From the sequence record PV764603.1: 64,000 bases of DNA; one strand, written 5' to 3'. The position numbers were made by a program, and so were the translations under genes. Below, one piece after another: positions 6,589 to 63,222 of the stretch. The notes beneath the pieces are model-generated. The model ran no database searches and was not told the DNA's origin. It saw only the letters and a program-made list of their open reading frames with translations. How positions within the stretch are numbered: the first letter of the stretch is position 1; every line of letters starts with the position of its first letter.

Positions 6589-6607
6589 TTTTGGCATCCT
6601 GTAAATA
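6589..6607 (+). promoter_or_regulatory. Phage promoter-like motif (TTTTGGCA half-site + TCCTGTAAATA)
   Basis: Intergenic copy of the recurrent motif, about 30 nt upstream of ATG 6637. Confidence 0.65.
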
Positions 6608-6636
6608 ACCCCTGACGACCTAGGGATTTTTCTACT

Positions 6637-7056
6637 ATGGATTTGACTGTCGAACTTACTACTGAGCCCTCCCGAAAACCATTCAACGGACCTGTCCAAA
6701 CGGAGACGTGGTGCTCAGATGGAGTTCCGGTGGTAGTGGTTTGGTACGCCACCCACCAATATGACGGGAAGTGGTGGGCAATCGTGACGGACATTGAACT
6801 TCCGAAACGATTCAAGCGCTTCCCTCGCGCAGTCCTGCACGAACTACTGCGCCATGCTATCAACGCGCTAGGCACTGAGTACCCCGTGCTCTACCCCTGC
6901 GCCCGTAAATTGCTGCGCCGAGTTGAACCGCTCTACATGCGCAGTCTCATTCAAGGCTACAAGCTCGGCATGCAATACCTCAAGTTTTCGCCGAATGGTA
7001 GCAAGCATCCATTTATGATTCTGAGAGAAGCCAATGATTCGCAATCCAGTGTTTGA
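6637..7056 (+). CDS. Hypothetical protein
   Basis: 139 aa ORF downstream of the promoter motif, overlapping the next gene. Confidence 0.6.
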   Translation: MDLTVELTTEPSRKPFNGPVQTETWCSDGVPVVVVWYATHQYDGKWWAIVTDIELPKRFKRFPRAVLHELLRHAINALGTEYPVLYPCARKLLRRVEPLYMRSLIQGYKLGMQYLKFSPNGSKHPFMILREANDSQSSV

Positions 7057-7546
7057 CCTATTCGATCTTGCTCCACACCACTCCACGCTCAAGTGGCTTG
7101 AAGAAGAACTGGAAGTCAGCGAAGCGACTGCTGATGATACCGATGAGTTCGATCAGAAGCGCTTGATCCATCTGCGCCGCCTACGCGATTTGGTTGCGGC
7201 CCTTCCGCTGGCAGCTACCCGCTATCAGCAGTCCCTGCGAGAAATGGAAGCTGCGCACTCGGAAGCAGTGTCCCTCACCAAGGTTGTGATGGATGGCCTT
7301 GCGAACACGCCGGGTGTTAGCTATGAGTTCGTGATCCACAATGGAGAGCCGGTGTTGAAGGTGGTGCCGCGTGCTCTTGAGTACACCGTGGCGATGGGCG
7401 AAGCAGGCGACAACTACATTCGGTCTGTGGCTTTCCAAGGGAAGTTCACCCTGCCTCACTCTTTCCGGTGGCATGCTCTTTGGGAAGCCATGCAAGCTGT
7501 AGCCTTGAATCCAACTGTTGAGTACGCCGATGGCCAAGCAACCTGA
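7034..7546 (+). CDS. Hypothetical protein
   Basis: 170 aa co-oriented ORF with an RBS-like site. Confidence 0.6.
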   Translation: MIRNPVFDLFDLAPHHSTLKWLEEELEVSEATADDTDEFDQKRLIHLRRLRDLVAALPLAATRYQQSLREMEAAHSEAVSLTKVVMDGLANTPGVSYEFVIHNGEPVLKVVPRALEYTVAMGEAGDNYIRSVAFQGKFTLPHSFRWHALWEAMQAVALNPTVEYADGQAT

Positions 7547-8123
7547 ACCTGCCAAGCCGGAAGTAGACATTACCCCAACGGACGCCAAGAAGTATCCGGG
7601 TACGTGGCCGTGTACGATCCCTGCACCTCGCCATTATCCGTTCTCCAAGCACACCAAGTTGAGCACGAAGATGCGCGTGCTGATCCTGCCCGGGCGCATC
7701 GAATACGATCCTGCAATGGCGGACATTGAGGCTGAGGTCAGCGGCCTTGCACGCAAGAACGACGTAACATTGGTGGCTCACGACTACTACCGAGGTGCTT
7801 GCGAAATCATGGCACGGCGTCTCGGGCTAGACTACATGGTCATCAACGTGGACAACGATGATGGTAGGACTCTGCCAACCACGGTAGCACGGGACATACT
7901 CAACACTAGCGTATCCGCGCGCCGACGCGTCCTGAGTAAATCCGATCTTGTGCTGGCGGTCACGGATAGTCCGTTCCTCGCCGCCCTTAGCAAGACCAAT
8001 GCCAAGCGCAAGTCTCCCCTCACGGTCAAGACCTTCCGGGCCAAGTACCACGATTACATTGACGCGAAGGTTAACGCCGTACCTACCACAACTCCCAAGA
8101 AGAAGCGCAAGAAAAAGTCATGA
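7530..8123 (+). CDS. Hypothetical protein, possibly divergent SLOG/YspA-like, with Lys-rich tail
   Basis: C-terminal ARRRVLSKSDLVLAVTDS...AKRKSPLTVK resembles the SLOG C-terminal pattern; ends PKKKRKKKS. Confidence 0.5.
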   Translation: MAKQPEPAKPEVDITPTDAKKYPGTWPCTIPAPRHYPFSKHTKLSTKMRVLILPGRIEYDPAMADIEAEVSGLARKNDVTLVAHDYYRGACEIMARRLGLDYMVINVDNDDGRTLPTTVARDILNTSVSARRRVLSKSDLVLAVTDSPFLAALSKTNAKRKSPLTVKTFRAKYHDYIDAKVNAVPTTTPKKKRKKKS

Positions 8124-8320
8124 GCGATTCCGAACTGTCTCCGTTCTTGGCCCGCAACAGGCCGTACACCCCAACTCCTGAACAGCGGGCAGCGATGGAT
8201 CGCAGCAAGAAATTCCATGATCCCCTCCGAGTGCAGAATGGCGCTCTGATTGGTGAAGGCTCTACCAGTCAGCGCTTGGACGAACTCTTACCCTACGGGT
8301 CTAGACTCATAAAGGCATAG
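8120..8320 (+). CDS. Hypothetical protein
   Basis: 66 aa ORF with ATGA overlap to the previous gene. Confidence 0.5.
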   Translation: MSDSELSPFLARNRPYTPTPEQRAAMDRSKKFHDPLRVQNGALIGEGSTSQRLDELLPYGSRLIKA

Positions 8321-8580
8321 TGATGACGATCCCACACCACACTAGGAAAGACCCTCCCCCGTACAACCCGGTTCTGATCGTGCTGATCTTGGCTCTAATC
8401 GCAGTCATCGTTTACGGCACCTTCATCAAGGAACGGAACGAGGCGCGTCTCAACGAGCACAACAGCCAGCTGTATTCGGAGCTGTGTAAGAAGCAGGGTG
8501 GCAACCCTCTGTACGCAAACGACCCTGACCATCGTACTTGCTTGGTCGGCAACACTCCCATCAACGTAATCCAGCCATGA
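8320..8580 (+). CDS. Bitopic membrane protein with two-Cys extracytoplasmic domain
   Basis: Hydrophobic helix VLIVLILALIAVIVYG, then LCKKQGG...RTC. Confidence 0.65.
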   Translation: MMTIPHHTRKDPPPYNPVLIVLILALIAVIVYGTFIKERNEARLNEHNSQLYSELCKKQGGNPLYANDPDHRTCLVGNTPINVIQP

Positions 8581-9512
8581 CTCTCGACCTGACCTACCCC
8601 AAGTGGTTCGCTCCCATTGAGGAGCAGATTCGTCACGAACGTGACACCTTCCGATACGATCAATGCGTTGCCGTTCGCAGTCCCTTTGGCGAATACGAGC
8701 GCGGCCTCGCTAGCATCTTCGGGCACGGTGATCCTGTCCCTGATCGTACTGGCACCGGCACCCTGTCGCAGTTCTGCCATCAGATGCGATTCAACATGCA
8801 CCCGCATACGGTGCTTGACAGTAGCAGTCCTTACTTCGGTCAGAGCCTGCCGGTGTACCCACTGGTCACCACGAAGAAGGTGCACTTCAAGTCGGTGTTC
8901 CATGAACTGATTTGGATGCTCAAGGGCCTGACCAACATCAAGTACCTTACCGACAACAAGGTCACGATTTGGGATGAGTGGGCAGACGAGAATGGCGACC
9001 TCGGTCCTGTGTACGGCAAGCAGTGGCGTGATTTCGCTGGTGTCGATCAAATCACGGAAGTGCTGGCAGAAATGAAGCGCAACCCGTACAGCCGCCGACT
9101 GGTCATCAGCGCGTGGAATCCGCAGGACTTGCCGGAAATGAAGTTGCAGCCGTGCCACATCCTGTTCCAGTTCATCGTGCGCAACGGTCGAATGAACTGC
9201 CACTTCTTCATGAGGTCGAATGACGCCTTCCTCGGAACGCCCTTCAACATCGCACAGTATGCGCTGCTGAATGCGTTGGTCGCCAAGACTATCGGTGTGC
9301 AGCCGGGTGAGCTTGTGCTGTCGGTGACTGACTTCCACCTGTACTCGAATCATCTGTCTCTGGCCAAGATGCAGCTGACCCGCGAGCCGTATCCCTATCC
9401 CTTCATCAACATCAAGACCGCTCGGGACAACCTGTGGGATTACAAGTTTGATGACGTGGAAATCATCGGCTACAAGTCGCACCCTGCAATCAAGGCGGAC
9501 GTTGCGGTATGA
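8577..9512 (+). CDS. thyA: Thymidylate synthase
   Basis: DRTGTGT, PLVTTKKVHF, GDLGPVYGKQWR, catalytic LQPCH, RSNDAFLGTPFNIAQY, DFHLYSNH. Start at ATG 8577 (ATGA overlap). Confidence 0.97.
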   Translation: MTLDLTYPKWFAPIEEQIRHERDTFRYDQCVAVRSPFGEYERGLASIFGHGDPVPDRTGTGTLSQFCHQMRFNMHPHTVLDSSSPYFGQSLPVYPLVTTKKVHFKSVFHELIWMLKGLTNIKYLTDNKVTIWDEWADENGDLGPVYGKQWRDFAGVDQITEVLAEMKRNPYSRRLVISAWNPQDLPEMKLQPCHILFQFIVRNGRMNCHFFMRSNDAFLGTPFNIAQYALLNALVAKTIGVQPGELVLSVTDFHLYSNHLSLAKMQLTREPYPYPFINIKTARDNLWDYKFDDVEIIGYKSHPAIKADVAV

Positions 9513-9823
9513 CGGCAGTTCTCACTGAACTGGACACCCGACTGGCTGAGGCAGGAATCACCCTGTCTCAGTTCGCACAGCGCATTGGCATTCCCGAGCA
9601 GGCTATCCATGCCAACATCGGGAAGGGCTGGTGCATGATTGACCCCTTGATGGCCGCTGCCTTCGCCCGATATTGGGGAACCACCCCTGACTTCTGGCTC
9701 GGTATCAGTCATCAGCAGAACGTAGAGCGTGCTCGGGAAATCCTCCCGATGATGACCTTCCCTGACCACACAACTTTGTTGAGCGGGCCGCCATGCGATT
9801 TCGTAGACATCAAGATCGGTTAA
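9509..9823 (+). CDS. HigA-like XRE-family HTH protein (orphan antitoxin-like)
   Basis: GITLSQFAQRIGIPEQAI...IDPLMAAAFARYWGTTPDFWLGI matches the HigA pattern (ITxxMAxRLAxxxGTSPEFWL). Confidence 0.75.
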   Translation: MTAVLTELDTRLAEAGITLSQFAQRIGIPEQAIHANIGKGWCMIDPLMAAAFARYWGTTPDFWLGISHQQNVERAREILPMMTFPDHTTLLSGPPCDFVDIKIG

Positions 9824-10155
9824 CTGCGGAAGTCCCTTGTCCAACCACCCACGATGGATTCGCCCGTGTATTCAGCGAGTTCATGCACGAAAGCCTCAAA
9901 CACTACCTTCGGGAAGTCGCATTTCCTGCCGCCAATTTCAGTATGCGCAACCGTGTGTTTGCCAACGAGCATGACGCCCTTGGCAACTCCGCGAATCTAC
10001 AACGAACATTGATTCAGACAGTGACCTACGAGTGCCCATCCCTATCGGCCTCAACAGTCATCTACGAATTGGTCCTTACTCCCACTGGCAAGAAGACGGG
10101 ATGGAAAGGATGGTTGCATGATCGCACACATAAAGGAGAAACGGTAGCCGCATAA
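9793..10155 (+). CDS. Hypothetical protein (start uncertain)
   Basis: Co-oriented ORF filling the gap between the HigA-like gene and the nuclease. Confidence 0.45.
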   Translation: MRFRRHQDRLTAEVPCPTTHDGFARVFSEFMHESLKHYLREVAFPAANFSMRNRVFANEHDALGNSANLQRTLIQTVTYECPSLSASTVIYELVLTPTGKKTGWKGWLHDRTHKGETVAA

Positions 10156-10189
10156 CTCCAGACAGGATTGTCGCTAACCGGTACCCATA

Positions 10190-11185
10190 ATGAAAAAATT
10201 CACCGCACCTCCTGACAATACTTGGGTGCAGCGACAGTTGTTCTCTTGGTGGAAGGAAGCAATCGACCACGGTGGCATGGACCCCGTGGATCAATCACGT
10301 AACGAATTCCTGCGACCTTCCGCCCTCCCTTTCTGTCCCCTCAAAGTCGGCTACAATCGTGTGGTCAATGGCGTGGAGACAGAGCGTTACTCCAGCTTCA
10401 ACGAAAGCTTCTACACCTCCATCGGTACAGCGGTTCACGAACTCTTGCAGAATTTCGTGGGCCGTTTGGCCGTTTCCAAAGGCGTAGAACTCAAGGTCGA
10501 GACACTAGGCCATTGGCACTGCAAGGCATGCGGTCGGAAGCGTAGATTCACCATCTACAAGCCATGCAAGTGCGGAGGCACGCCCGAGTACGAGGAAATC
10601 TCTATCCACTGGCGTACCACCGTTGGCCACATCGACAAGGTGATCCGGGTGGGCAACTGCCTCTTCATTCTTGACTACAAGACCACGGGCTCTATGGCGA
10701 TACGCAAGCATCGCGCTGGCGCTCCTGCTGGTGAGCCTTACTTCCCATACCCAGCCAACCGCGCGCAGATCATGCGTTACGTCGGTCTGTTTGAAAAGGT
10801 GTTCGCCAAGGAGTTTGAACCCGGCGGTCGCTTTGAAGGCACTACGGTCATGGGCGCAATCTTGGCTTACGTGAGCCGCGAGACTGTCCGTGACGTGGCG
10901 TTCGTGTACTTGCCCGCTACGCGTAAGCGCAAGAAGAAGGAATATCGGAAGGCAGTGCGCGACGATGCACTGTTCGTCACGATGAAGGAAGCTGTAGCCA
11001 AGCGTTCCAAGAAACTCTTCATCGAGTTGATCGAGGAAAAGCCCTGCGCTGATCGGGATGACTACGATCAGAAGATGCACAGCAGATACGATGAGTGTCC
11101 GTTAGTCAACGTATGCTTTAGACGCCGACAATTGCTCAAACAAATCGACAAGGCCCTAAAGGGTCAGATCAAACCCAAGGACTAA
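10190..11185 (+). CDS. Cas4-like / PD-(D/E)XK exonuclease
   Basis: RPSALPFCP, IGTAVHE, GHID...ILDYKT, QIMRY, C-terminal C...CPLVNVC (Fe-S-type), plus an inserted CKAC...CKC zinc ribbon. Confidence 0.8.
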   Translation: MKKFTAPPDNTWVQRQLFSWWKEAIDHGGMDPVDQSRNEFLRPSALPFCPLKVGYNRVVNGVETERYSSFNESFYTSIGTAVHELLQNFVGRLAVSKGVELKVETLGHWHCKACGRKRRFTIYKPCKCGGTPEYEEISIHWRTTVGHIDKVIRVGNCLFILDYKTTGSMAIRKHRAGAPAGEPYFPYPANRAQIMRYVGLFEKVFAKEFEPGGRFEGTTVMGAILAYVSRETVRDVAFVYLPATRKRKKKEYRKAVRDDALFVTMKEAVAKRSKKLFIELIEEKPCADRDDYDQKMHSRYDECPLVNVCFRRRQLLKQIDKALKGQIKPKD

Positions 11186-11187
11186 CA

Positions 11188-11775
11188 GTGACTAATCCCA
11201 TCCGCATCGCACTCTGCGGCTTGCCGCACTCGGGCAAGGATACCAGCGCAGATATTCTCGTTGATCGCTTCGACTTTGTACGCCTTCGGTTCGCTACTCC
11301 AGTCAAGATGGCTGCCGCAGAAATGTTCGGATGGGATGCTAACGATGAGGAGGACAAGGACAGTCCTCTGATCCGTAACATCGCAGGGGACTACCTGAGC
11401 AAGCGCGACATTTGGCGCGATATGGCGGAGAACTACATCAAGCCACGTTTCGGGCAGGACTTCTTTGCGCGCGCCCTGACTAAGGAAGCATCGGTCCACT
11501 ATCACTCTGACAACATCGTAGTGACGGACCTGCGCTTCCCCATCGAGGCTATGGTGTTGCGACGTGCTGGCTTTACCGTCATCGAAGTGCAGCGCGAAGA
11601 CCAGCCCATTGTGGACGGCCTCCACAATCATCGGGTCGAAATCCAAGACCTTAGCAACTACATCGACTACCAAATTTCCGCACCCTCGGGCTTGCCTCTG
11701 GAGAACCTCCAAGACAAGTTGGGGCAGGCGTTGCAGGGAATCCTCGTAAAGATCAATCCTGTAAATAAACGCTGA
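11188..11775 (+). CDS. Deoxynucleoside monophosphate kinase (T4 gp1-like)
   Basis: P-loop IALCGLPHSGKDT, FATPVK, VVTDLRFPIE. Confidence 0.85.
   Translation: MTNPIRIALCGLPHSGKDTSADILVDRFDFVRLRFATPVKMAAAEMFGWDANDEEDKDSPLIRNIAGDYLSKRDIWRDMAENYIKPRFGQDFFARALTKEASVHYHSDNIVVTDLRFPIEAMVLRRAGFTVIEVQREDQPIVDGLHNHRVEIQDLSNYIDYQISAPSGLPLENLQDKLGQALQGILVKINPVNKR
11756..11767 (+). promoter_or_regulatory. ATCCTGTAAATA promoter-like motif
   Basis: Exact motif copy at the end of the kinase gene, 37 nt upstream of the next start. Confidence 0.6.
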
Positions 11776-11803
11776 GTATTGAAACGTCCCGCTGGAGACA
11801 TTT

Positions 11804-12748: not shown

Positions 12749-12752
12749 CGCC

Positions 12753-12968: not shown

Positions 12969-12970
12969 GA

Positions 12971-14677: not shown

Positions 14678-15078
14678 AGACCATCACAGACTTGATGGCG
14701 CTTTGCCCGAAGGTTCAGTACGAGAAGGCACGAGAGACTCGCATCTTGAATGCCAGCGCCGGACTGAGCCGTTCGGGCCTTCGCACCATCAGAGCCGTAG
14801 TACAGCGCGTCAGCGACAAGGGCGCGCATGACAAGCATCGGGTAGAGATTCAGTGCGTAGAGCCTGACACTCTACTCGGTGAGGGCTACGTAAAGGTGTG
14901 GTGTGACTGCGGATTCCAAGTCTTCTACGGACAGGAAGTGCTGCTGACTAAGCAGGGTGCCAGTAGCATTCGGTACTCTGACGGCAGCATGCCTAACATT
15001 CGCAATCCGGGCGGAGTCATGATGCTCTGCCACCACACTCTGCGCATCGCCTTAGCAATACGATCCAAGAAGCTATGA
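14674..15078 (+). CDS. SWIM-type zinc finger protein
   Basis: VWCDC...LCHH (CxC-xn-CxH); GTGA overlap. Confidence 0.65.
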   Translation: MKTITDLMALCPKVQYEKARETRILNASAGLSRSGLRTIRAVVQRVSDKGAHDKHRVEIQCVEPDTLLGEGYVKVWCDCGFQVFYGQEVLLTKQGASSIRYSDGSMPNIRNPGGVMMLCHHTLRIALAIRSKKL

Positions 15079-16091
15079 GTCGCAACTCTGCATCTATCCA
15101 AGCTACAAAGACAGTCAAGGAAACGATGCAGGGACGCTGGAATGATAGTCAGATGATGACTGCATTGGACCAGCTTCTCATGCTGGCCGTGGAGCCTATC
15201 ATCAGGCACACGGAGTTCTTTGATAGAAACATGCCAGCGATGCTTTGCTGGTACGCAACAAACACAGGACGCAAGATTAGTTCGGTTGACAAGCCCAAGG
15301 TTCTGCACCTCATGAACCTGTACTTGTTGGCCGACAAGGCTCAGGATAAGGTGCGCTTGGTGCGCCGAATGAAGCTGGAGAGAAACATCCTCTTCTTCAT
15401 CATCAAGCGCTTCTGCACGTTGGCCAAGGACTATCCGAAATTGGAGGTGCTTTACGCTCAGAAGCGCCTGCCGTCGCGTCGGATAGCTATGGAGAGAATT
15501 GAGCAGCTAGTCGGTGCGGGTAAGAACCTAGGTCGCGTGCTTCAACGCGTCAAGTCATGGGAAACCGAAGCTACCAAATTCAGGAATCAGATTCTTGAAC
15601 GGTTCATGCGGCACGCCATGATGCAAGCGGTGAAGTTCAACCGGGAGAATCCACGCACTGACCTTGAAGACGTAACGCAAAACTTTGTGCTGGCGGTGAA
15701 CAAAGCGGTGAACAAGATGAACCCCGATAAGGGAACGCTCGCTCCTTATACTCAGAACTGGATCACGAATGCCAAGCATTCGCCTACACAGTCTCATGAG
15801 TACGGGATCGCATACTCCCTGTCTCCGCATGCAAAGCGGGCTGTGGCTAGGGGCGATCTACAACTGGTGAATATTTCTTCGGACTTTGAGACTGAGGAAG
15901 TGTTCAACCAACCGGATAGCACAGATGAGTTTGAGAAACTCACCGAGGAAGATCGGGCACAGCGGGTACGCCTGCTGGCAAAGATTGCTGACCCGGATGG
16001 TTTTGCGCGCCAAGAGTTGGGCATTGAGGAACTGCTGCTTCCGCATGAAGTGGTACGCATCGACGCCAAACGACATTCTTGTAAACAATAA
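15075..16091 (+). CDS. Phage RNA polymerase sigma factor (sigma70 region 2-like)
   Basis: DLEDVTQNFVLAVNKAVNKMNPDKGTLAPYTQNWI aligns with sigma region 2 (DLIQEG.IGL.KAV.KFDP.KG..FSTYA.WWI). Confidence 0.75.
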   Translation: MSRNSASIQATKTVKETMQGRWNDSQMMTALDQLLMLAVEPIIRHTEFFDRNMPAMLCWYATNTGRKISSVDKPKVLHLMNLYLLADKAQDKVRLVRRMKLERNILFFIIKRFCTLAKDYPKLEVLYAQKRLPSRRIAMERIEQLVGAGKNLGRVLQRVKSWETEATKFRNQILERFMRHAMMQAVKFNRENPRTDLEDVTQNFVLAVNKAVNKMNPDKGTLAPYTQNWITNAKHSPTQSHEYGIAYSLSPHAKRAVARGDLQLVNISSDFETEEVFNQPDSTDEFEKLTEEDRAQRVRLLAKIADPDGFARQELGIEELLLPHEVVRIDAKRHSCKQ

Positions 16092-17792: not shown

Positions 17793-17828
17793 GGGAGGAC
17801 GTGCTACCCCACGTCCTCCCTTATTTTT
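17793..17828 (+). terminator. Intrinsic terminator between SSB-like gene and recA
   Basis: 11-bp stem gggaggacgtg/cacgtcctccc followed by ttattttt. Confidence 0.85.
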
Positions 17829-26246: not shown

Positions 26247-26258
26247 ATCCTGTAAATA
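26247..26258 (+). promoter_or_regulatory. ATCCTGTAAATA promoter-like motif
   Basis: Intergenic, just after the terminator and before the clamp-loader gene. Confidence 0.65.
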
Positions 26259-26262: not shown

Positions 26263-27540
26263 GTGGCAGATGCCTCCATTGGAGAACCCGAAGTGAGCGA
26301 CACGAAGAGTAAGAAGAAGTCCAAGAACAAGGATGGGAAGGTCAAGAAGAAGTCCAAGTCTACGGAGGTTGCAGTACCCGTAAGCGATACGGTGGACAAT
26401 CGCAGCCTCGCTGTGCGCTGGCGTCCGAAGGACATTGATGACCTCGTTGGTCAGACGGAGATCATCAACAAGTTCAGGGGCATGTTGAAGACCAAGAAGA
26501 TTCCGGGCGCGATCCTGCTGGTCGGTCCCACTGGCTGTGGCAAGACCACTGTTAGCCAGATGATCGCTCGGTACGTCAACTGCGAAACCATGAACGCATG
26601 TGGCAAGTGTCAGAACTGCCTGATGCCGATTGAGTCCCATCCTGACTACGAGCAGGTGAATGCTTCGGAGAAGCGTGGCATCGACGACGTGCGCGCGATC
26701 ATCCAGCGCAGCAAGAACCGTCCGCGCCTCGGTAACCTTCGCATCCTGCATCTGGACGAAGTGCACCAGCTTACACCACAGGCTGCTGAGGCCCTGCTGG
26801 TGCCTCTGGAGAAGCCACCGGAACAGACGCTGTATATCCTGAGCACCACCGATCCGCAGATGCTCAAGCAGACGATGCGCAATCGCTGTGTGCCGATGAA
26901 CATCCAGCTGGTGCCGACGGCGGACGTAATCAAGCGCATCAAGTTCATCGCAGGGAAGGAGAACATCAAGGTCGGGGATGAGGTGATCGAGCATCTGGCC
27001 AACCTGTCGCAGGGTTACATGCGTGACAGCGTGCAGTTGCTGGAAGCTGTGCAGATGCAGCTGGCTAACAACCCGAAGCTCAGTGCCGACGAACTCAAGG
27101 CCATCTTGAGCAACAACGCACAAGCTGGTGGTCAGGAAGGTTTGGACGACCTAGCGATCAAGGTGCTGACTGCGTGCTACGGGCTCAATCGTGTTGGCGT
27201 CGCCAAGTACATGCTCGACCTGCGTACCGATTGGGTGCCGTTCCTGTCCAAGTGCATCTGGCTGAATCAGTACATCGTGGATGCGGAACTGACCAAGAAC
27301 ATGCGCTACCACCCGAACGTGTGGCATAACCCACTCAACAAGCGCTTCGCGTCTGTCATCAAGAACTCGGTCGAGGGCTTCGATCCCAGCAAGGGCAAGG
27401 TGATTGAAATGCTCGCATCGTTGCAGCGTACCCTGATCGACCTCCGACAGAAGTGCATCAGTGGCGGCATTGCCAGCGTCGAGCGGATGATGATTACCTC
27501 CCACCTGATCGGCTGGGTTGTGGATTCCAAGAAGGGATAA
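26263..27540 (+). CDS. dnaX: DNA polymerase III gamma/tau-like clamp loader subunit
   Basis: RWRPKDIDDLVGQ, Walker A GPTGCGKTT, zinc C...CGKCQNC, NASEKRGIDDVR, LDEVHQLT..AAEALL.PLEKPP, NRC. Confidence 0.88.
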   Translation: MADASIGEPEVSDTKSKKKSKNKDGKVKKKSKSTEVAVPVSDTVDNRSLAVRWRPKDIDDLVGQTEIINKFRGMLKTKKIPGAILLVGPTGCGKTTVSQMIARYVNCETMNACGKCQNCLMPIESHPDYEQVNASEKRGIDDVRAIIQRSKNRPRLGNLRILHLDEVHQLTPQAAEALLVPLEKPPEQTLYILSTTDPQMLKQTMRNRCVPMNIQLVPTADVIKRIKFIAGKENIKVGDEVIEHLANLSQGYMRDSVQLLEAVQMQLANNPKLSADELKAILSNNAQAGGQEGLDDLAIKVLTACYGLNRVGVAKYMLDLRTDWVPFLSKCIWLNQYIVDAELTKNMRYHPNVWHNPLNKRFASVIKNSVEGFDPSKGKVIEMLASLQRTLIDLRQKCISGGIASVERMMITSHLIGWVVDSKKG

Positions 27541-34990: not shown

Positions 34991-36171
34991 ACTCCCTTCC
35001 GGCTAATCCTCAACCCCTGTCCCTCCACTCTAGGCCCATCCACACCCATCCCGCCTATCCTCCTCCCCTGCACATTCCCTCCGGCAAAAGCTTCCCTACC
35101 CATAACAAGGTAGAGAATAGGAATAGGGAGGATAGGGAGATAACCATAGCAGCATAGACAGTGAGGGAAGAGAATACAGGGAAGAACATAGGGGCAGGGA
35201 ATAAGCCTACTGCACACAATACAGAAGAGACAGGGACATAAGCTGGTATCCACACTAGATAGAAGCCATAGAGGATCATGCAAGAGATAGCAGCTATCCA
35301 GACCAATACCTTCGGTATCTCCCTACAGGACCAGACTAGGCAGTTAGTAGACAATGACCTAATCTCCCCTAGGGTCAAAGCCATATTGTTGGAGCAGCGC
35401 TCCACCGCCCTACTGTCTGACCGCATGGCAATCATTGGTCATCCTACACTGACTGCCCTGCTTACCAACCCATTCACCATCACGGGAGGATCACCCTATT
35501 ACCGTCGCTATCGGGTACGCACACTACGCCACTGCCGCACCACACTTGCAGTGTCGCCTCGCATCCCCATCAAAAACCTCTAGAAGTCGGTTACACCCAC
35601 TGAGTAATCGGGCAGATAAGGCAACAGGGTGCCATTTTGGCATCATCTGGACAACTACCGGAGTTTAGGGCAGTAAAGACCAGTATTTTCGTGCGAACAC
35701 CTTGCAGACCCCTAGGGCTTCCCCTTTGAACGAGTGGAGGCCCTTCTTTTTGACCGAAATATGACTGATTGACCACGTCAAAGCTCGGAGTCAAGGATTT
35801 GGCACCTTCCTGTAGAGGCCGAAAGAAGATTTTCTTCTCGGACCTCGGGCATCCCCTCATGCGTTGCCAAAATGGCACCGTCGGAGTGTCGGAATACACC
35901 CGAAAATGGCCCTTGACGTGGTACCCCACAGGGCGAAAAATTTAGGGGCTCCAGGATGCGTCTAGACACCCGATCCTTGCCAAGGATTACCGAGTTTGAC
36001 GCAAGGATTTTTCAAATATTTTGAGTCTGAGCAGGCCAATCCTGTAAATATTGGGTGTGGGCAAAACAGGGTGCCAAAATGGCAACATCACTGCCCTGTC
36101 CGACCAATTTTTCGACGCAGAACGCACCCTCCGTCCGAGGGTATGAATTTTTTGACGACCGAGGGTCAAAA
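34991..36171. other. Largely non-coding, strand-asymmetric segment with palindromes (candidate origin, terminus or control region)
   Basis: C/T-rich 34991-35100, then A/G-rich 35101-35280. Three TGCCA-N3-TGGCA sites, ATCCTTG-C-CAAGGAT at 35973-35987, and CCTGTAAATA at 36041-36050. Confidence 0.5.
35278..35583 (+). CDS. Possible hypothetical protein
   Basis: GAGGA RBS, 101 aa, atypical codon usage. Confidence 0.35.
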   Translation: MQEIAAIQTNTFGISLQDQTRQLVDNDLISPRVKAILLEQRSTALLSDRMAIIGHPTLTALLTNPFTITGGSPYYRRYRVRTLRHCRTTLAVSPRIPIKNL

Positions 36172-39985: not shown

Positions 39986-40014
39986 TTGACAGGGGGATAG
40001 GGTCCAGGCATAAT
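39986..40014 (+). promoter_or_regulatory. Host sigma70-type (early) promoter
   Basis: TTGACA (39986-39991), 17-bp spacer, CATAAT (40009-40014), upstream of gene 40097. Confidence 0.85.
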
Positions 40015-40970: not shown

Positions 40971-41312
40971 ATGACCATGAACGCCAAGACCGCCAAGACC
41001 ACTTCGGACGTTGATGCACAGCGCGATGCCATGCAGAAAGCCAACAAGGCCGAGCAGTTCCGCCGCCACTCCCTGCTGCAAAGCATGACGGCCGACGGTC
41101 CCCTGTTCGTCCCCCTCGACAAGGCCCACACCTTCGGTCTCGCTCCCGCTGGCCGTGGCGGTGCCGCCCACCTTGACGCGCTGGAATCCCTCGGCCTCAT
41201 GGCTGCGCTGGTGCCCCACGCAACCAACCCGGACACATGGGGCGGCTACCTCGTCTGCCGGTCCAGCTGGGCACGCGAGCAAGTAGGTCCGGACGACGCC
41301 AAGTTCCTCTGA
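40971..41312 (+). CDS. Hypothetical early protein
   Basis: AAAGGA RBS, ATG 40971. Confidence 0.65.
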   Translation: MTMNAKTAKTTSDVDAQRDAMQKANKAEQFRRHSLLQSMTADGPLFVPLDKAHTFGLAPAGRGGAAHLDALESLGLMAALVPHATNPDTWGGYLVCRSSWAREQVGPDDAKFL

Positions 41313-41387
41313 CCCTGTAAACCTAGATTAGACGCGCCGCCTTCAGGCGGCTTCGTCGTATCTGCCACCCCGACCTAAAGGAATATC

Positions 41388-42348: not shown

Positions 42349-43137
42349 ATGAGAGTCCTGTCTACCGTAGGGTCCAACAAGTTCGTCTGGACCGATCATC
42401 ACCTAGACTACACCGCACCCGAAGACGATTCGCTATCTAGTGAGACTGCTTCCTCCGAAGAACACGCTCATGCGTTGAAACGTACTTCCTTACATCCCGA
42501 AGACCAAAAAGGGCACAAGGCACACGTAACTCGGGCACGCCAAACATCCGAACACGTTGGCCATGCAGTAGATCACTACAGAAGTATCGGACACAACGAT
42601 TTTAACCGAGAACTCCGCCATCCCTCCCACAAGGGTAAGATCAAAGGCAACGGTGACTACAACTTCACCGACCATTCGCTACATGATCTGCATAAAGGAT
42701 TGGGGCACGCTACCAGTTATCAGCTGAAACACAAGACCGCTGTGTACCGTGGGGTGGGCGAAGCCGCCCACAAGATCAAGGCGCTCAAGAAGGGAGACAC
42801 CTTCACTGACCACGGGTACACCAGTACCAGCCATAGCCCCTCAGTAGCCATTTCTTCCTTCGGTCATAGCGAGCACACGGGTACGCATCGAGAGCATCAC
42901 GTCGTCAAGATTCATTTGCCCAAAGGCTCCAAGATTATGCACGTACCTCACCACGTTGATGATGGCCTTACCCGGCATGAGGCAGAAACGGTGCTGCACC
43001 ACGGTAACAAGTTCAAGGTCTTGGGTCACAGCGTCCACGATCTACCGGGTAGTCCGTCCGGACACTCTTCCTCATTCGATAGCACCAAGCACCGGGTGCA
43101 CGTAACCCACGTCAAGCTAGTAAAGCAACGCAAATGA
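42349..43137 (+). CDS. Histidine-rich ADP-ribosyltransferase (R-S-E clade, VIP2/Alt-like)
   Basis: YRSIGHNDFNRELR, TAVYRGV (R), FTDHGYTSTS (S), RHEAETVL (ExE); about 39 His in 262 aa. Confidence 0.85.
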   Translation: MRVLSTVGSNKFVWTDHHLDYTAPEDDSLSSETASSEEHAHALKRTSLHPEDQKGHKAHVTRARQTSEHVGHAVDHYRSIGHNDFNRELRHPSHKGKIKGNGDYNFTDHSLHDLHKGLGHATSYQLKHKTAVYRGVGEAAHKIKALKKGDTFTDHGYTSTSHSPSVAISSFGHSEHTGTHREHHVVKIHLPKGSKIMHVPHHVDDGLTRHEAETVLHHGNKFKVLGHSVHDLPGSPSGHSSSFDSTKHRVHVTHVKLVKQRK

Positions 43138-43192: not shown

Positions 43193-43217
43193 GTGCCATT
43201 TTGGCATCCTGTAAATA
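43193..43217 (+). promoter_or_regulatory. Palindrome TGCCATTTTGGCA abutting TCCTGTAAATA
   Basis: Intergenic, upstream of an AAGGAGG RBS. Confidence 0.7.
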
Positions 43218-43330
43218 TAGGGACAAAGGAGGCGCTATGCCCCTCAAAGAACGGGTCCAACGGGGTGGTCCTTTTATCCCCGACTTCGTAGACGTTCGCT
43301 ACATCACCCATAGCCCAACAAGGAAGCCCC

Positions 43331-43867
43331 ATGAGCCCGAAGCTCTGCATCATGAACGACACCCACAACCAGCAGTCGGCTGTGATCGTCACCCTCCAGA
43401 AAGACGTGATTGCCCACACGATAAAGTTTGCCTACGAAGGTGACCCGGAAGGCCCTCGTTTCCGCCTGCCCACCGATCGGGGTAGCCTGATGCGCCTGCG
43501 TGACCTGATCGACAGCGTGCTTGATCCGAGCGTGGTTCCTGTCAACACCCTGCGTCAGCTGGCCGACCGTTGGGCAGCTGATCGTGACTACAAGGGCAGC
43601 CCGGTTGACGACATTCGCGCGCTGATTGGCGACACGCAAGATTCAGCACCCACCCTCGATCCCAAGTACCGGATGGCGTTGAAGTTTGCTATAGGTCATC
43701 TGGACATGAGCGACCAACCCGAGTACGGACAGCTGCAAGAACTGTTGGCCATGACCGAGCGTGGGGAAGGTGCACGTAACCCGTGCGCGCACTGCGATGA
43801 CGGCAAGGTCATCAACGAGAACTTCCGTACTGTTGAGCCGTGCCGCCACTGTGAGGACGCCAAATGA
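43331..43867 (+). CDS. Hypothetical protein with C-terminal CxxC...CxxC
   Basis: AGGA RBS; ends CAHCDDG...CRHC. Confidence 0.6.
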   Translation: MSPKLCIMNDTHNQQSAVIVTLQKDVIAHTIKFAYEGDPEGPRFRLPTDRGSLMRLRDLIDSVLDPSVVPVNTLRQLADRWAADRDYKGSPVDDIRALIGDTQDSAPTLDPKYRMALKFAIGHLDMSDQPEYGQLQELLAMTERGEGARNPCAHCDDGKVINENFRTVEPCRHCEDAK

Positions 43868-50229: not shown

Positions 50230-50550
50230 ATGCCATACTCTACCCGTAATCGTGGCCTCTACATCATCATCGCGCTGCTCACGGGCATGCTGGGGTTCCA
50301 CAACTTCTACGCAGGACATTTGAAGAAGGGTGGCCTCCAGTTCTTGGCCACCGTGGTCAGCATCCTGATTATCCCCGTGACTGCCATGCTGTCTGTCCTG
50401 ATTTCTGGCGGTGACAACGGCGGTGAGGCGTCCAAGCTGGTGATGTTCGCTGTGGTTGCTGCTCCTGTGCTGGCAGTGTGCAATGCAATCAGCGTGATCC
50501 TGGACATCGTTGAAACCAAGTCTGACGGCTATGGCGATTTGATGCGTTGA
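50230..50550 (+). CDS. TM2-domain membrane protein
   Basis: RGLYIIIALLTGMLGFHNFYAGHLKKGGLQF, the canonical TM2 pattern (LG.LG.HrFYlG....G+); AAGGA RBS. Confidence 0.85.
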   Translation: MPYSTRNRGLYIIIALLTGMLGFHNFYAGHLKKGGLQFLATVVSILIIPVTAMLSVLISGGDNGGEASKLVMFAVVAAPVLAVCNAISVILDIVETKSDGYGDLMR

Positions 50551-50579
50551 AGAAAAGGCCCCAATTGGGGCCTTTTCTT
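50550..50579. terminator. Perfect 30-bp palindrome, bidirectional terminator
   Basis: aagaaaaggccccaa|ttggggccttttctt. Confidence 0.8.
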
Positions 50580-50599
50580 TTGCCGGAAATAATGAGAGG

Positions 50600-50625
50600 T
50601 TGCCAAAATGGCAATCCTGTAAATA
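50600..50625 (+). promoter_or_regulatory. Palindrome TGCCAAAATGGCA + ATCCTGTAAATA
   Basis: Intergenic, upstream of an AAGGAGG RBS. Confidence 0.7.
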
Positions 50626-50645
50626 TAGGATACAAGGAGGACGAT

Positions 50646-51038
50646 ATGATCCCAGACTTTGACCTGTCCAAAGCAGTGCGCCAAACCAAGTTCGTGGGCC
50701 CCAACTCGAAGACAGGTAACTGCACTGAGGCGGCTATTGCCACCCTGCTGCAAATTCCCCTAAGCGCCGTTCCCGAATTCAACCGTAGCGAAGACGACGC
50801 ATCTGACTTTTGGGAGAGCGTTGAAAGCTTCTTGGTTGAGCACGGGCTCTACATCAAGTACACCACCAAGCACAAACAGGGTGTGTATCTCGTAAGCGGT
50901 CCCACGGTAAGAGGCCGAGGGCATCACACTGTCATCTACAAGGATGGACAGTTGGCGTGGGACCCGCATCCCTCCGACGCAGGCGTCACCGAAGACGTGT
51001 GGTGCCTACACCTTCAAGACACGGATCCATACGCATGA
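50646..51038 (+). CDS. Papain-like / C39-like cysteine-protease-fold protein
   Basis: Putative catalytic triad GNCTEAAIA (Cys), HHTVIY (His), WDPHP (Asp). Confidence 0.6.
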   Translation: MIPDFDLSKAVRQTKFVGPNSKTGNCTEAAIATLLQIPLSAVPEFNRSEDDASDFWESVESFLVEHGLYIKYTTKHKQGVYLVSGPTVRGRGHHTVIYKDGQLAWDPHPSDAGVTEDVWCLHLQDTDPYA

Positions 51039-55761: not shown

Positions 55762-55767
55762 TCGAAA

Positions 55768-57925: not shown

Positions 57926-57926
57926 A

Positions 57927-57952
57927 GTGCCATTTTGGCAACCCTGTAAATA
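57927..57952 (+). promoter_or_regulatory. Palindrome TGCCATTTTGGCA + CCCTGTAAATA
   Basis: Intergenic, upstream of gene 57980. Confidence 0.7.
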
Positions 57953-57979
57953 TCAGATACCTAACACACTAGGACTGTC

Positions 57980-58549: not shown

Positions 58550-58550
58550 A

Positions 58551-59069: not shown

Positions 59070-59078
59070 TTGCATAGG

Positions 59079-59110
59079 GTGCCAAAATGGCAACGGTGCC
59101 AAAATGGCAC
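59079..59110. promoter_or_regulatory. Tandem pair of GTGCCAAAATGGCA palindromes
   Basis: Two copies spaced 17 bp, intergenic, upstream of the CYTH gene. Confidence 0.7.
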
Positions 59111-59130
59111 CCTCGATTATTGGAGTCTTC

Positions 59131-59646
59131 ATGGCCGTTGAAATCGAACGCAAGTGGTTTGTGAAATCCCAGGAATGGGAGAAGCAATCCACTATGCACT
59201 ACTCTATCGTGCAGGGCTACTTGGCAATGTCTGCCGACGCGACTGTTCGGGTGCGTAACGGAGACAAGGGTGCACAGGTGTGCATCAAGTCAAGAAACGC
59301 AGGCGTGTCACGGCAGGAATTTGAATACCGAATCCCTGCCGAAGACGCAGACGCACTGATGAACATGTGCAGCCTCATCGTTAGCAAGACCCGTCACCTT
59401 GTCCCCTATGGTGGTCACACCTTTGAGGTTGACGTTTTCCACGGGCCCCTGCAAGGCTTTGTCATGGTCGAGCTTGAACTCAAAAGCGAAGACGAAGAGT
59501 TTGCCTTGCCGGAATGGCTTGGCAAGGAAGTCACCAAGTACCGCTGCTGTTACAACGAAGACCTCGCACGCTTGGTACGTGCTAACCCCGACGCCAATAT
59601 CTACCGCCTGTTGAAACAGGAAATGGAGGCTGAGGATGGACGTTAA
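59131..59646 (+). CDS. CYTH-domain (triphosphate tunnel) protein
   Basis: MAVEIERKW (ExExK), IVQGYL, VRVR, RQEFEYRIP, KTRH, FEVDVFHG...MVELE, WLGKEVT. GGAG RBS before ATG 59131. Confidence 0.9.
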   Translation: MAVEIERKWFVKSQEWEKQSTMHYSIVQGYLAMSADATVRVRNGDKGAQVCIKSRNAGVSRQEFEYRIPAEDADALMNMCSLIVSKTRHLVPYGGHTFEVDVFHGPLQGFVMVELELKSEDEEFALPEWLGKEVTKYRCCYNEDLARLVRANPDANIYRLLKQEMEAEDGR

Positions 59647-60043
59647 AATTCCTGGGCTTAACCTTGAGTACGTGCGTGCCATTACAGGTGTCACCTCCCG
59701 AACCATAGCCATGTGGCAGAGTGGCAAGACCCTGCCGACGATGAAACAGATGGACGTAATCGAAACGGTTAACGCCATCCTCGCCAACTGCCCTTCGGTA
59801 CACCATCAAATCGCAACCTCGCATGTTCTGTCGTATGGCCTCAAGCAACCCATCGAGGGTTTCAATACGCTGGCCGAGTTGTGTCAGGCTGCGTGTCAGG
59901 AACGCAACCCACAATTGCACTCACTGCTGATTAGCGGGATTGCTGAGTTTGAGGCGGAGATTGAGGCGCATGCAAAACGTCTAGCACGTCCCCTTGCTCG
60001 CCACCCTAACCGAGCGTGGGAATCCGAGTATCCATCCTGCTAA
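59636..60043 (+). CDS. HTH-containing protein, weakly Xre/MbcA antitoxin-like
   Basis: VRAITGVTSRTIAMWQSGKTLP is an XRE-like HTH; GGAGG RBS. Confidence 0.5.
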   Translation: MDVKIPGLNLEYVRAITGVTSRTIAMWQSGKTLPTMKQMDVIETVNAILANCPSVHHQIATSHVLSYGLKQPIEGFNTLAELCQAACQERNPQLHSLLISGIAEFEAEIEAHAKRLARPLARHPNRAWESEYPSC

Positions 60044-60052
60044 GGAACGCAC

Positions 60053-60493
60053 ATGTATACGCCTTATCAATACGAGTGCAAATGCAAATGTCACGTGCCG
60101 GATTCCACGGTAGACCACGATACACCTTGCTGCAAGCCTAATCCTACTCAGCAGGAAATGATCCTTCGGGAGCTACTGGCCAGCTACGCAGGCAGTCCAC
60201 TGTTGTATCGGGACGATGGTGAGTTGCAGGACAGCGAGATTGACTTCCTGCGCGATCATCCAATAGAGATTGCCAAGAAGCTGACCACTCGGGCGCTGAT
60301 GAAAGTTGCAGCCGCACAGCAACGCATAGAAATCAAAGAGTTTGAGCATGTGCATCCGTGCCACATGGAAACGTGTGCGTGTTCAACGCATGTTCTGTAC
60401 CTTGATGGCGTAGCACTCACCGACGGTTCGCGGAAAGAACTTGAATCCATCGAACGTCACCTCCGTAGTTCACTGGCGAATAGTAGTGCATGA
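60053..60493 (+). CDS. Hypothetical Cys/His-containing protein
   Basis: AAGGA RBS; CKCKCH...CC and C..C.C.TH clusters. Confidence 0.55.
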   Translation: MYTPYQYECKCKCHVPDSTVDHDTPCCKPNPTQQEMILRELLASYAGSPLLYRDDGELQDSEIDFLRDHPIEIAKKLTTRALMKVAAAQQRIEIKEFEHVHPCHMETCACSTHVLYLDGVALTDGSRKELESIERHLRSSLANSSA

Positions 60494-60723
60494 ACGTCTT
60501 CAAGGATTGGCTCACACGGAACAACTTGACGCTAATCCAAGGGGCAAAGGAACTGGACTTGGGGAAGCGGACTATCGCGCGCTACTGTGCCGAACCATCT
60601 GAGGTTCCCGAGATAAGTATCCTCGCGCTGGCAGGCTGGGAGTTCAGCAAAGGCAAGAGGAAGCAAGCTACTGCATTGTGCGAGCTTGTCGAGAAACTCA
60701 AAAAGAAGAGGATGAAGTCGTGA
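60490..60723 (+). CDS. Small XRE-like HTH protein
   Basis: FKDWLTRNNLTLIQGAKELDLGKRTIARY. Confidence 0.65.
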   Translation: MNVFKDWLTRNNLTLIQGAKELDLGKRTIARYCAEPSEVPEISILALAGWEFSKGKRKQATALCELVEKLKKKRMKS

Positions 60724-61673
60724 CCGAACAGAAAGAAACGTTTGAGGAATTCCGAGCACGCAAGCAAGCAGAGTTGCAGCCGCATCTGCAAGACACCTTC
60801 CAAGGTGACGATGCCCGTCTGATCGCATCGGTTGAATCCTTGATTGCAATGGACCTTGACGGCGTGTTGGTGCCGCATGGTATTGGTGGTACGGGTCGAG
60901 CCCTGTTGGCTGCACTAGCATCGCGCCTGCGCACTTTGAACGAAGTCATGGAGCACGTGGACCCTGCACAACTACCGGGTCTGCCTACCGACCTTCGGTT
61001 CAAGCTGGGTGCCTACGCAAAGCCAGCAGGTTCTATCCCACGCCTGATCGTGGAACCCACCACGCCTGACGAACATCGTGCCCTGTCGGAACACCTTAAT
61101 TCGTTGAAGCGCGAGCAGCTGGTCACCGACGATCAAAGCGAAGCCAAGGCCAATCTGCTGACTCTGATGCAGAGTCGCCGTGCCGAACGTGCTCCCATTG
61201 ATGGGGATCACAAGGATGGCCTCGACCGCATGTTCTCGGACATCGTGCACGAACGTGCTATCGACCTTGGTGCCATTGGCGAAGATAGCTGGTTCGAGTT
61301 CGACAGTCAGGAGAAGCTGGAGGAATACATCAAGCTTGTCATGCAGGACTGGCTGCCCACCATGATCGAAGGCACCGAAGTCAGCGTTGACCTTGACTCC
61401 ATATTTGGTTCCGAAGGTCGTCGCCTGTTCGGTACGGTTACTTGCGCGCAGGAGCATAATGGTCACAACGGCGTCATCCTGCTGATGCAGGAGCCGGAAC
61501 CAAACTGGAATCACTTCCCTACGCGAGAGGGTGTGGATGCAGACAACGATCCAGTGTGGACCGGGCGCTTTGAAGCGCAAGGCCAGTGCATGATTTCGTC
61601 CACCACCGAAGGCGTCATCATTTCCAATGGAGCCCGCGTTGCGTTCCTAGGTCCACGCGAAGTCAACAAGTAA
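60720..61673 (+). CDS. Hypothetical multi-domain protein
   Basis: GAGGA RBS, GTG 60720; about 317 aa. Confidence 0.6.
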   Translation: MTEQKETFEEFRARKQAELQPHLQDTFQGDDARLIASVESLIAMDLDGVLVPHGIGGTGRALLAALASRLRTLNEVMEHVDPAQLPGLPTDLRFKLGAYAKPAGSIPRLIVEPTTPDEHRALSEHLNSLKREQLVTDDQSEAKANLLTLMQSRRAERAPIDGDHKDGLDRMFSDIVHERAIDLGAIGEDSWFEFDSQEKLEEYIKLVMQDWLPTMIEGTEVSVDLDSIFGSEGRRLFGTVTCAQEHNGHNGVILLMQEPEPNWNHFPTREGVDADNDPVWTGRFEAQGQCMISSTTEGVIISNGARVAFLGPREVNK

Positions 61674-61683
61674 CGGAGCTGTC

Positions 61684-62007
61684 ATGACAAGAAGTGTATA
61701 CTCAGAACGCCGCGAGCAATTCCAAGCCATCTTGGTTAGTCGTGACCCGGACTTCCTGCCCTACATCACGCAATGGATAGACTACGAAGGCAACCACAAG
61801 AATCGGCTCAAGATGGCGCACGACATTGAACTCAAGGACGGTCGTGTCCTCACTGAGTATCGCCCCAACGGTTCGGGCTGGTATGCCAACGTTGACCGCA
61901 AGGGAGAACCCAATCGGGTTGATGATAGTCAAGTGAAGCGCATTCGTTTGTCCATGCGGCAGTATCCGTGGGAACCTGACCCTAACGAGAAAAGCGATGA
62001 AGCTTAA
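61684..62007 (+). CDS. Hypothetical protein
   Basis: GGAG RBS. Confidence 0.6.
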   Translation: MTRSVYSERREQFQAILVSRDPDFLPYITQWIDYEGNHKNRLKMAHDIELKDGRVLTEYRPNGSGWYANVDRKGEPNRVDDSQVKRIRLSMRQYPWEPDPNEKSDEA

Positions 62008-62266
62008 ATGGCAGTCAGTTAGCAAGATGGTCAGCTTCGGGCCACACACCCGAGGCATGAGAATACAGCAGGTTGACGAGGCGCGCTATGCGGGCTATGT
62101 CGCTGCGATTACGCCAGAGAACGTTGTCCTGATTCATCCCGACGACACCACGCCTGCCACCTATGGTGGTCAACGCGTGAGCATTCATATCCACGCGGGC
62201 AATCGGGAGAGTGCTCAGGAGTTCGCGGTAGCTACCCTCAAGGCGCTGGAGAAGGTGAACGCCTAA
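61997..62266 (+). CDS. Hypothetical protein
   Basis: Overlap-coupled ORF. Confidence 0.55.
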   Translation: MKLKWQSVSKMVSFGPHTRGMRIQQVDEARYAGYVAAITPENVVLIHPDDTTPATYGGQRVSIHIHAGNRESAQEFAVATLKALEKVNA

Positions 62267-62688
62267 TGGACTTTGTGGCTGGTCCGATATTGATGTTTCG
62301 CAACACGCACGTGGCGATGATCCATCGCCGCGATAACAACAAGTGGGTGATCCCGGGCGGTAAGCCTGACCACAACGAGTTGCCTGTCATGACAGCGATT
62401 CGTGAACTCAAGGAAGAGACGGGCATCGACTTGCTTTCGCTGGGCTATATCAGCATGGATATGCAACCCTGTTGGTTTGCCTCGCCCAAGCTGGGTGTGC
62501 CATCCAAGCACACACTCATTCTGTACTACCTGGTACAGGTAGACGAAATGTATCCCATCCACAACATTGAACCTGCCAAGCATCACGATGCACAATGGAT
62601 CGACCTCAAGGAACTGGGTCGCTACAACGTGGGCTCACGTGATTTGCAGGCACTCCGTAACGCTCGACTTCTGCAACGAGGACGCTAA
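62266..62688 (+). CDS. Nudix hydrolase
   Basis: Nudix box PGGKPDHNELPVMTAIRELKEETG. Confidence 0.92.
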   Translation: MDFVAGPILMFRNTHVAMIHRRDNNKWVIPGGKPDHNELPVMTAIRELKEETGIDLLSLGYISMDMQPCWFASPKLGVPSKHTLILYYLVQVDEMYPIHNIEPAKHHDAQWIDLKELGRYNVGSRDLQALRNARLLQRGR

Positions 62689-62894
62689 TGCTTCTTACCC
62701 ATAAGCTGGACCCACTGGTATTCCTGACTGGCGCAAATGATCTTGAACATGCTCGACGCATCATTGCAGTTGAAGAAGGGCTCATGCAACGCCCTGACCT
62801 CCGGCACCTTACTGTGATCCCCACCAAGGAGCAGCAGGAGGCCCACATCAACCGGACCCTCAAGGAAATGGATGATGAAACGCCAGCAGCGTAA
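62688..62894 (+). CDS. Hypothetical protein
   Basis: GAGGA RBS, TAATG overlap. Confidence 0.5.
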   Translation: MLLTHKLDPLVFLTGANDLEHARRIIAVEEGLMQRPDLRHLTVIPTKEQQEAHINRTLKEMDDETPAA

Positions 62895-63138
62895 ACTCCT
62901 GTTTGGTGCCCTGTACGTCGTGTGCGTTCTCCTGTTTTCGGTCTTTATCAACCGCACCTACGTGATCGGGAAGAACTTGGACAGCAAGCAGGATGCAATC
63001 AACACGGAATGGTGTGAAGAACGTGGTGGCCACCTAACGTTCCAGCGATACCCGCCACGCACTTTCTGCATGAAGGATGGCGTAGAGGTTGAACCGCAGT
63101 ATCTCAAGTCCGAAGTTTGGATTGGCACTACCCCTTAA
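62872..63138 (+). CDS. Bitopic membrane protein with two-Cys domain
   Basis: TM helix LLFGALYVVCVLLFSVFI, then WCEERGG...TFC. Confidence 0.65.
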   Translation: MMKRQQRKLLFGALYVVCVLLFSVFINRTYVIGKNLDSKQDAINTEWCEERGGHLTFQRYPPRTFCMKDGVEVEPQYLKSEVWIGTTP

Positions 63139-63222
63139 TACCGCAATCTCAATAGTGTAAATAACCTATGGGTGGTATGCTCCGGCATGCCGCTCATTTT
63201 TCATTTCCCAATCGGAGTTTCC

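Follow-up and report, generated by a model that had tools for sequence, protein, structure and literature searches.

Within the first 64,000 nucleotides (nt) of Xanthomonas phage PhiXhv-16 (PV764603.1, 229,154 base pairs (bp)), here called the window (bases 1-64000 of the record, 100% identity), a short motif, TGTAAATA, recurs upstream of genes and was interpreted as a phage-specific middle-type promoter, with the truncated sigma factor encoded at 15075-16091 as the leading candidate for its reader. A probability of about 0.8 was assigned to this explanation as a whole. Judged from sequence, promoter function and membership in a middle-type class are well supported, and the narrower claim that the truncated sigma factor reads the motif is held tentatively, at somewhat less than even odds. 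The phage, a phiRSL1/Lu11-like jumbo myovirus infecting X. hortorum pv. vitians, is under development for the biocontrol of lettuce leaf spot; its paper (PMC13340338) is silent on gene regulation and mentions no sigma factors, promoters or motifs. The starting point was a preliminary description of the window, in which the motif had been proposed as a probable promoter for a phage-encoded sigma factor.

Number, form and placement of the box

Genome-wide counts were made on the complete annotated record PV764603.1, the first 64 kb of which equal the window. Eight copies of TGTAAATA were found in the window at the positions listed in the preliminary description, all on the plus strand, against 0.44 expected, and 0 of 100 shuffled sequences reached eight; CC precedes seven of them (giving CCTGTAAATA), as had been described, and AG precedes the eighth (63156). 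The two variants named earlier, TGTAAACA (16080) and TGTAAACC (41316), are also present. The whole genome holds 18 copies, and all 18 point in the local gene direction, namely on the plus strand in 1-70 kb and at 221.8 kb, and on the minus strand in 70-142 kb and in the divergent gap at 184.5 kb. Over the full genome, the motif with its 18 copies was the top-ranking over-represented sense 8-mer of PhiXhv-16 (17 sense copies versus 0.5 expected, z 23.3), the single copy scored as antisense being the one in the divergent gap, which is sense to the adjacent minus-strand gene. With two or fewer mismatches to ATCCTGTAAATA allowed, 24 sites were obtained genome-wide, 23 of them sense, against approximately 6 expected on both strands, and variant boxes of this kind precede the DNA polymerase (216341) and helicase (142031) genes.

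The information profile of the box is a single block, A-T-C/A-C-TGTAAATA-W, extending from -4 to +8, with no information upstream of -4 and no -35-like block, and this agrees with the suggested form of a single -10-like element resembling the T4 late promoters. Of the eight window copies, six stand between genes, one is in the final codons of the kinase gene and one falls within the annotated open reading frame (ORF) 50547-51038. The association with terminators stood: counted by eye, as minimum-energy folds absorb the T-tract, 7-8 of 23 boxes genome-wide directly follow a GC hairpin with a T-run. The distance of 5-130 nt to the next start had been set too wide, since in 13 of the 18 exact cases only 19-39 nt separate the box from a start codon and a Shine-Dalgarno sequence lies in this interval; the unannotated ORF start 43237 and the probable corrected start 50646 are counted in this tally. 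The genes behind the boxes serve replication, recombination, nucleotide metabolism and accessory functions, and the structural blocks (142.7-181.8 kb and 184.5-216 kb) hold no copy of the box, in keeping with the middle-type class proposed before. One box (genome 127707-127714, minus strand) lies 266 nt upstream of a CsrA-like gene (127204-127440); the distance means either a long leader or a small gene or RNA that is missing from the annotation.

Conservation of the box in related phages

The exact word TGTAAATA is not enriched in Motura, phiRSL1 or BCSR5. In an unbiased whole-genome k-mer ranking, the top 8-mers of Motura and phiRSL1 were CGTAAATA (37 copies versus 1.9 expected) and AGTAAATA (17 versus 0.45), respectively, and the conserved core is therefore GTAAATA with a lineage-specific 5' flank, which is ATCC-T in PhiXhv-16, AAATC-C in Motura and GC-A in phiRSL1. 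The boxes of Motura and phiRSL1 are gene-oriented and almost absent from the modules homologous to the structural genes of PhiXhv-16. A box stands directly before the SSB gene in Motura, phiRSL1 and Lu11, the place at which PhiXhv-16 has the weaker TGTAAACA. In PhiXhv-15, the genome of which is near-identical around the boxes, 18 of 18 boxes are retained, and at two sites the upstream DNA was replaced up to the edge of the box while the box and the downstream gene were kept.

The Lu11 record (NC_017972) carries 16-nt regulatory features named 'putative middle/late promoter' with the annotated word aaaaCTGTAAATA; the features read CTGTAAATACATAGTA, CTGTAAATACAGTGTA and CTGTAAATGGTGAGTA, in each case behind AAAA, and one of them stands before the SSB gene. 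The Lu11 paper is cited in PMC7412058 as Adriaenssens et al. 2012, J Virol 86:6369. The box class was therefore already predicted in this phage group. The putative promoter of Lu11, CTGTAAATA, is like the PhiXhv-16 box in its core, its single-box form and its placement before SSB and DNA-metabolism genes, and Lu11 likewise encodes a member of the same sigma family beside SSB and RecA; the two differ in the flank (AAAA in Lu11, ATCC in PhiXhv-16), the Lu11 promoters are predictions only, and the record of PhiXhv-16 has no annotation of this sort. On the basis of these comparisons, the boxes of PhiXhv-16 appear to be the local version of a GTAAATA box common to the phiRSL1/Motura/Lu11 jumbo phages. 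They add to a predicted promoter class, and are useful for annotation and not surprising to a specialist in phage transcription.

The truncated sigma factor

The product of gene 15075-16091 had been described as a region-2-like sigma factor, and the searches upheld this: it is a member of the sigma family with region 2, and no region 4 was detected. It matched the phage sigma family phrog_17569 with an expect value (E) of 8.6e-50, and its matches to cellular sigma factors were weak, confined to region 2 and below the curated cut-offs of both profiles (Pfam Sigma70_r2, E 1.3e-3; TIGR02937, E 1.3e-5, the latter match ending before the region 4 part). A structure model built on 15 homologs had a mean pLDDT (predicted local distance difference test) of 76; its residues 16-240 superpose on residues 108-446 of sigma70, which comprise region 1.2, the non-conserved region and regions 2.1-2.4, with Z of 14.9 for 5yix and 10-12 for many holoenzyme chains, and the family alignment shows no variation at the positions equivalent to Y430 and W434 of sigma70. 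The C-terminal part of approximately 85 amino acids forms three helices of unassigned type in the model. Sigma70_r4 gave no match genome-wide at E <= 1, a divergent remnant being possible in this C-terminal part, which was not folded alone. Whole-genome scans with hidden Markov models (HMMs) detected one sigma-like locus only.

The family was found in 93 phage records, and in seven of the ten carriers tested GTAAATA exceeded its reversed control, the respective counts being 38 and 2 in BCSR5, 29 and 3 in BcepSauron, 42 and 7 in Motura, 23 and 5 in PhiXhv-16, 48 and 19 in Y3, 60 and 26 in Lu11, and 69 and 30 in GR7B.

The box as a probable promoter and its possible reader

From the statistics, orientation, spacing, distribution over gene modules and conservation of the motif, we infer that a phage-specific class of promoters without -35 has A-T-C/A-C-TGTAAATA-W as its -10-type core, and that the units of non-structural genes, i.e. 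those for replication, recombination and nucleotide metabolism and many small accessory genes, would be started from it. If TAAATA occupies -12 to -7, transcription would start approximately 7 nt past the box, and leaders of 12-30 nt carrying the Shine-Dalgarno sequence would be produced. The phage phiRSL1 is rifampicin-sensitive and encodes no RNA polymerase (PMC5468394), and the host core enzyme is therefore used; as the phages of the phiRSL1/Motura/Lu11 group have no RNA polymerase of their own, the host core would have to be directed to the box by a phage-specified factor. The 5' flank follows the phage lineage and not the host, which points to a phage-encoded reader. The truncated sigma factor is a plausible one because a -10-only promoter suits a sigma factor without region 4, and the box spans exactly the region that is contacted by sigma region 2. 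Were it the reader, its gene would be under positive feedback and would need a first trickle of expression.

Several observations weigh against this explanation. The sigma gene lies between the terminators at ~6575 and 17793-17820, where the boxes at 6600 and 11760 are the sole promoter candidates, no host-type promoter having been found on its strand within this terminator-bounded unit; a sigma factor that is the sole reader of the boxes could not start its own synthesis from a unit headed only by them. Motura, phiRSL1 and Lu11 have the same layout. GTAAATA was not enriched over its reversed control in three of the sigma carriers, PaBG, RHEph12 and Afa-NA1. The conserved T-purine step 6-7 nt past the box, a candidate start-site dinucleotide, is clear only in PhiXhv-16 and weak in Motura and phiRSL1, and no start-site mapping for any phiRSL1/Lu11-like phage was found in the literature (the time course of phage Matilda misses the early phase; bioRxiv 10.64898/2026.10.21.760668). 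Only one sigma-like gene is detectable, yet a second motif class also wants a reader. This class (cAATTTTAg, AATTTAG or AATTTGA) is located in gaps before structural genes and is a candidate late promoter; five of the eight plus-strand copies of AATTTTA fall in late-block gaps totalling 2.9 kb, against 0.1 expected. Its counterparts, AATTTAATA in Motura and cAATTTGATgg in phiRSL1, occur mostly in structural modules, and AATTTAAT (10 copies versus 0.63 expected) and AATTTGAT (17 versus 2.6) are over-represented in Motura and phiRSL1, mostly within or adjoining structural modules.

The clustering of this late class, together with the position of the sigma gene downstream of the boxes in all four phages, would also be accounted for if the box were a middle promoter read by an earlier-made factor and the sigma factor, itself switched on by the box, were to read the late class. 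The earlier-made factor would be either a form of the host polymerase that an early phage protein modifies or assists, or another sigma-like protein of very divergent sequence. Sigma genes transcribed from one promoter class usually read the next class, as with T4 gene 55 and SPO1 genes 33/34, and by analogy the sigma factor of PhiXhv-16 could be made from box promoters and in turn read the late class. In line with such an order of events, there is a separate early class: it consists of three host-type promoters close to consensus, and the unit driven by one of them has an ADP-ribosyltransferase gene at its end. However, the late motif is weakly defined, AT-rich words being favoured in gaps anyway, and it lacks the conserved -11/-7 A/T pattern that is normally read by region 2, whereas GTAAATA spans the -10 region. 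Ahead of GTAAATA there is no conserved box of the activator type, and in Motura one copy of AATTTAATA lies just upstream of the sigma operon. For a second sigma factor, gp112 of PaBG has been reported as a possible candidate (PMC7412058), and a homolog is encoded at genome 74532-75578 on the minus strand (E 7e-10 to PaBG gp112); its profile comparison with the sigma family was not significant (probability 0.4%) and lends this candidate no support, and the HMM scans pointed to a single sigma-like locus. This division of labour between the two factors is considered possible and on balance unlikely.

That the sigma70 holoenzyme of the host, without modification, reads the box as a general early promoter with a weak element of the -10-only or extended -10 kind was judged improbable. 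The boxes do serve small accessory ORFs as well as replication genes, TG precedes TAAATA in PhiXhv-16 and Lu11, and three clear host-type promoters are few for approximately 150 kb of non-structural genes. However, host sigma70 needs T at -7, a near-invariant position at which TAAATA has A; the TG is one base out of the extended -10 register and is replaced by CG in Motura and AG in phiRSL1; and there is no -35, while the 5' flank varies in the lineage-bound manner described above. An RNA-level or other DNA signal, i.e. a site of processing, a translational operator or the target of a replication or packaging protein, would fit the strand-specific placement upstream of genes (as a 5'-leader RNA element) and the presence of a gene for a CsrA-like regulator, but is very improbable. 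Many boxes stand only a few bases past intrinsic terminators and would be reached by little RNA; the shortest box-to-start distance, approximately 19 nt, and the lack of boxes in every structural unit agree with a promoter class; and CsrA-type sites are GGA-based. A small chance was left for options other than these.

Comparison with known systems and significance

The late promoters of T4 (TATAAATA) are read by gp55 with gp33 and the sliding clamp. Like them, the PhiXhv-16 box is an 8-bp -10-type element without -35, the two sharing six of eight bases; the candidate reader is likewise a sigma factor reduced to region 2, and the phage encodes its own clamp and clamp loader. In contrast to T4, the box would drive non-structural genes and is absent before virion genes, and the sigma factor, with 338 amino acids and an N-terminal part resembling region 1.2 and the non-conserved region, has no sequence match to gp55. 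The exact T4 word has 0 copies in the PhiXhv-16 genome, and sequence searches of the sigma factor against Pfam, NCBIfam and PDB returned no phage late-sigma family, only generic sigma70 region 2. In the SPO1 cascade (gp28, then gp33/34) and with gp36 of phiEco32, phage sigma factors retarget the host core to phage promoter classes in temporal order, as would be the case here; those factors use bipartite (-35/-10) or differently built promoters with experimentally mapped targets, whereas PhiXhv-16 has one detectable sigma factor for two phage-specific motif classes.

For annotation, the box gives an operon map, corrects several gene starts and separates non-structural from virion genes. The box, the sigma factor and the host core together form a ready test system for the widespread jumbo phages without a polymerase, and the conserved core with its lineage-specific flanks is a natural data set for the co-evolution of a minimal sigma factor and its promoter.

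A wider, speculative and rather unlikely scheme is a three-step programme run on the host polymerase. A few host-type promoters would serve takeover genes including the ADP-ribosyltransferase gene; the sigma factor with regions 1.2 and 2 only would then read the T4-late-like GTAAATA box of the middle genes, its own gene included, as a self-amplifying switch, with a palindromic operator, TGCCAWWWTGGCA, gating some of these promoters; and a third factor would read the AATTTnA class of virion genes. Under this scheme a region-2-only sigma would serve replication genes rather than late genes, and the -10 box would have a lineage-specific upstream extension co-evolving with it.

Other signals and gene annotation

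The features on which the analysis rests are collected in Table 1.

Table 1. Boxes, genes and other signals discussed in the text (window positions unless marked as genome positions)
Feature	Position	Strand	Remarks
Box ATCCTGTAAATA	6596..6607	+	directly behind a strong terminator hairpin; 29 nt to start 6637
Box ATCCTGTAAATA	11756..11767	+	overlaps the 3' end codons of the kinase gene; 36 nt to start 11804; heads the tightly packed unit containing the sigma gene
Box ATCCTGTAAATA	26247..26258	+	after a terminator; before the clamp-loader-like gene
Box ATCCTGTAAATA	36039..36050	+	28 nt to start 36079; palindrome TGCCAAAATGGCA 21 nt downstream
Box ATCCTGTAAATA	43206..43217	+	abuts a palindrome; 19 nt to unannotated ATG 43237 with strong Shine-Dalgarno
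Box ATCCTGTAAATA	50614..50625	+	abuts a palindrome; 20 nt to ATG 50646 with strong Shine-Dalgarno
Box ACCCTGTAAATA	57941..57952	+	abuts a palindrome; 27 nt to start 57980
Box ATAGTGTAAATA	63152..63163	+	sole window copy without CC; 23 nt to start 63187
Weaker variant TGTAAACA	16080..16087	+	27 nt before the SSB-like gene
Variant CCTGTAAACC	41316..41323	+	past the stop of 40971-41312; function uncertain
Truncated sigma-family gene, 338 amino acids	15075..16091	+	region 1.2, non-conserved region and region 2
Strong intrinsic terminator	17793..17820	+	closes the unit holding the sigma and SSB genes
Palindrome TGCCAWWWTGGCA, 13 bp	35630-35642, 35865-35877, 36072-36084, 43194-43206, 50601-50613, 57928-57940, 59080-59092, 59097-59109	strandless	
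Host-type promoter TTGACA-N17-CATAAT	39986..40014	+	near-consensus, in a 395-bp gap; candidate early promoter
ADP-ribosyltransferase gene	42349..43137	+	annotated 'hypothetical protein'; PF03496, E 2e-8
Second-class motif	genome 3581, 164594, 166419, 175583, 181587, 184463, 195822, 206645, 228750		gaps before structural genes

The palindrome TGCCAWWWTGGCA occurs in eight copies against 0.3 expected, all of them inside 35.6-59.1 kb and two in tandem, and three copies touch the 5' edge of TGTAAATA boxes; a dimeric regulator of the phage probably uses it as its operator and thereby gates some of the box promoters, a role for which the palindrome is put forward as a candidate.

Three look-alike near-consensus host-type promoters (ggtggtTTGACA-N17-TATGAT/CATAAT-agg) were found at 39986 (plus strand) and at genome positions 81780 and 96399 (both minus strand), all intergenic and in sense orientation, and are regarded as a candidate early class separate from the boxes. 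A more general use of host-type promoters was rejected, 183 matches being counted against approximately 226 expected, i.e. no enrichment. Gene 42349-43137, with which the unit downstream of the 39986 promoter ends, has weak matches to Alt-like RNA polymerase ADP-ribosyltransferases. An ADP-ribosyltransferase is a typical early host-takeover function.

Three annotations near the boxes were reconsidered. The true start of gene 50547-51038 is probably ATG 50646, the annotated 50547 being too far upstream. The 68-amino-acid ORF 43237-43443, with its strong Shine-Dalgarno sequence 19 nt after a box, was probably omitted from the annotation. The 'DnaA' of the record (26263-27540) is clamp-loader-like (Pfam DNA_pol3_delta2, E 7.5e-29), and its start may be the in-frame GTG 26293.

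A divergent gap of 738 bp separates the helicase gene from the structural block (genome 141990-142726). It contains two copies of TTAGACACGCCnnCGTTACAGTAAAATC followed by a strong hairpin, and may represent a small RNA, a replication origin or a regulatory region. The gene for the large subunit of the terminase (window 1-3582, plus strand) contains an intein that includes a homing endonuclease domain of the LAGLIDADG type (Pfam Intein_splicing and LAGLIDADG_3), owing to which its product is 1193 amino acids long.

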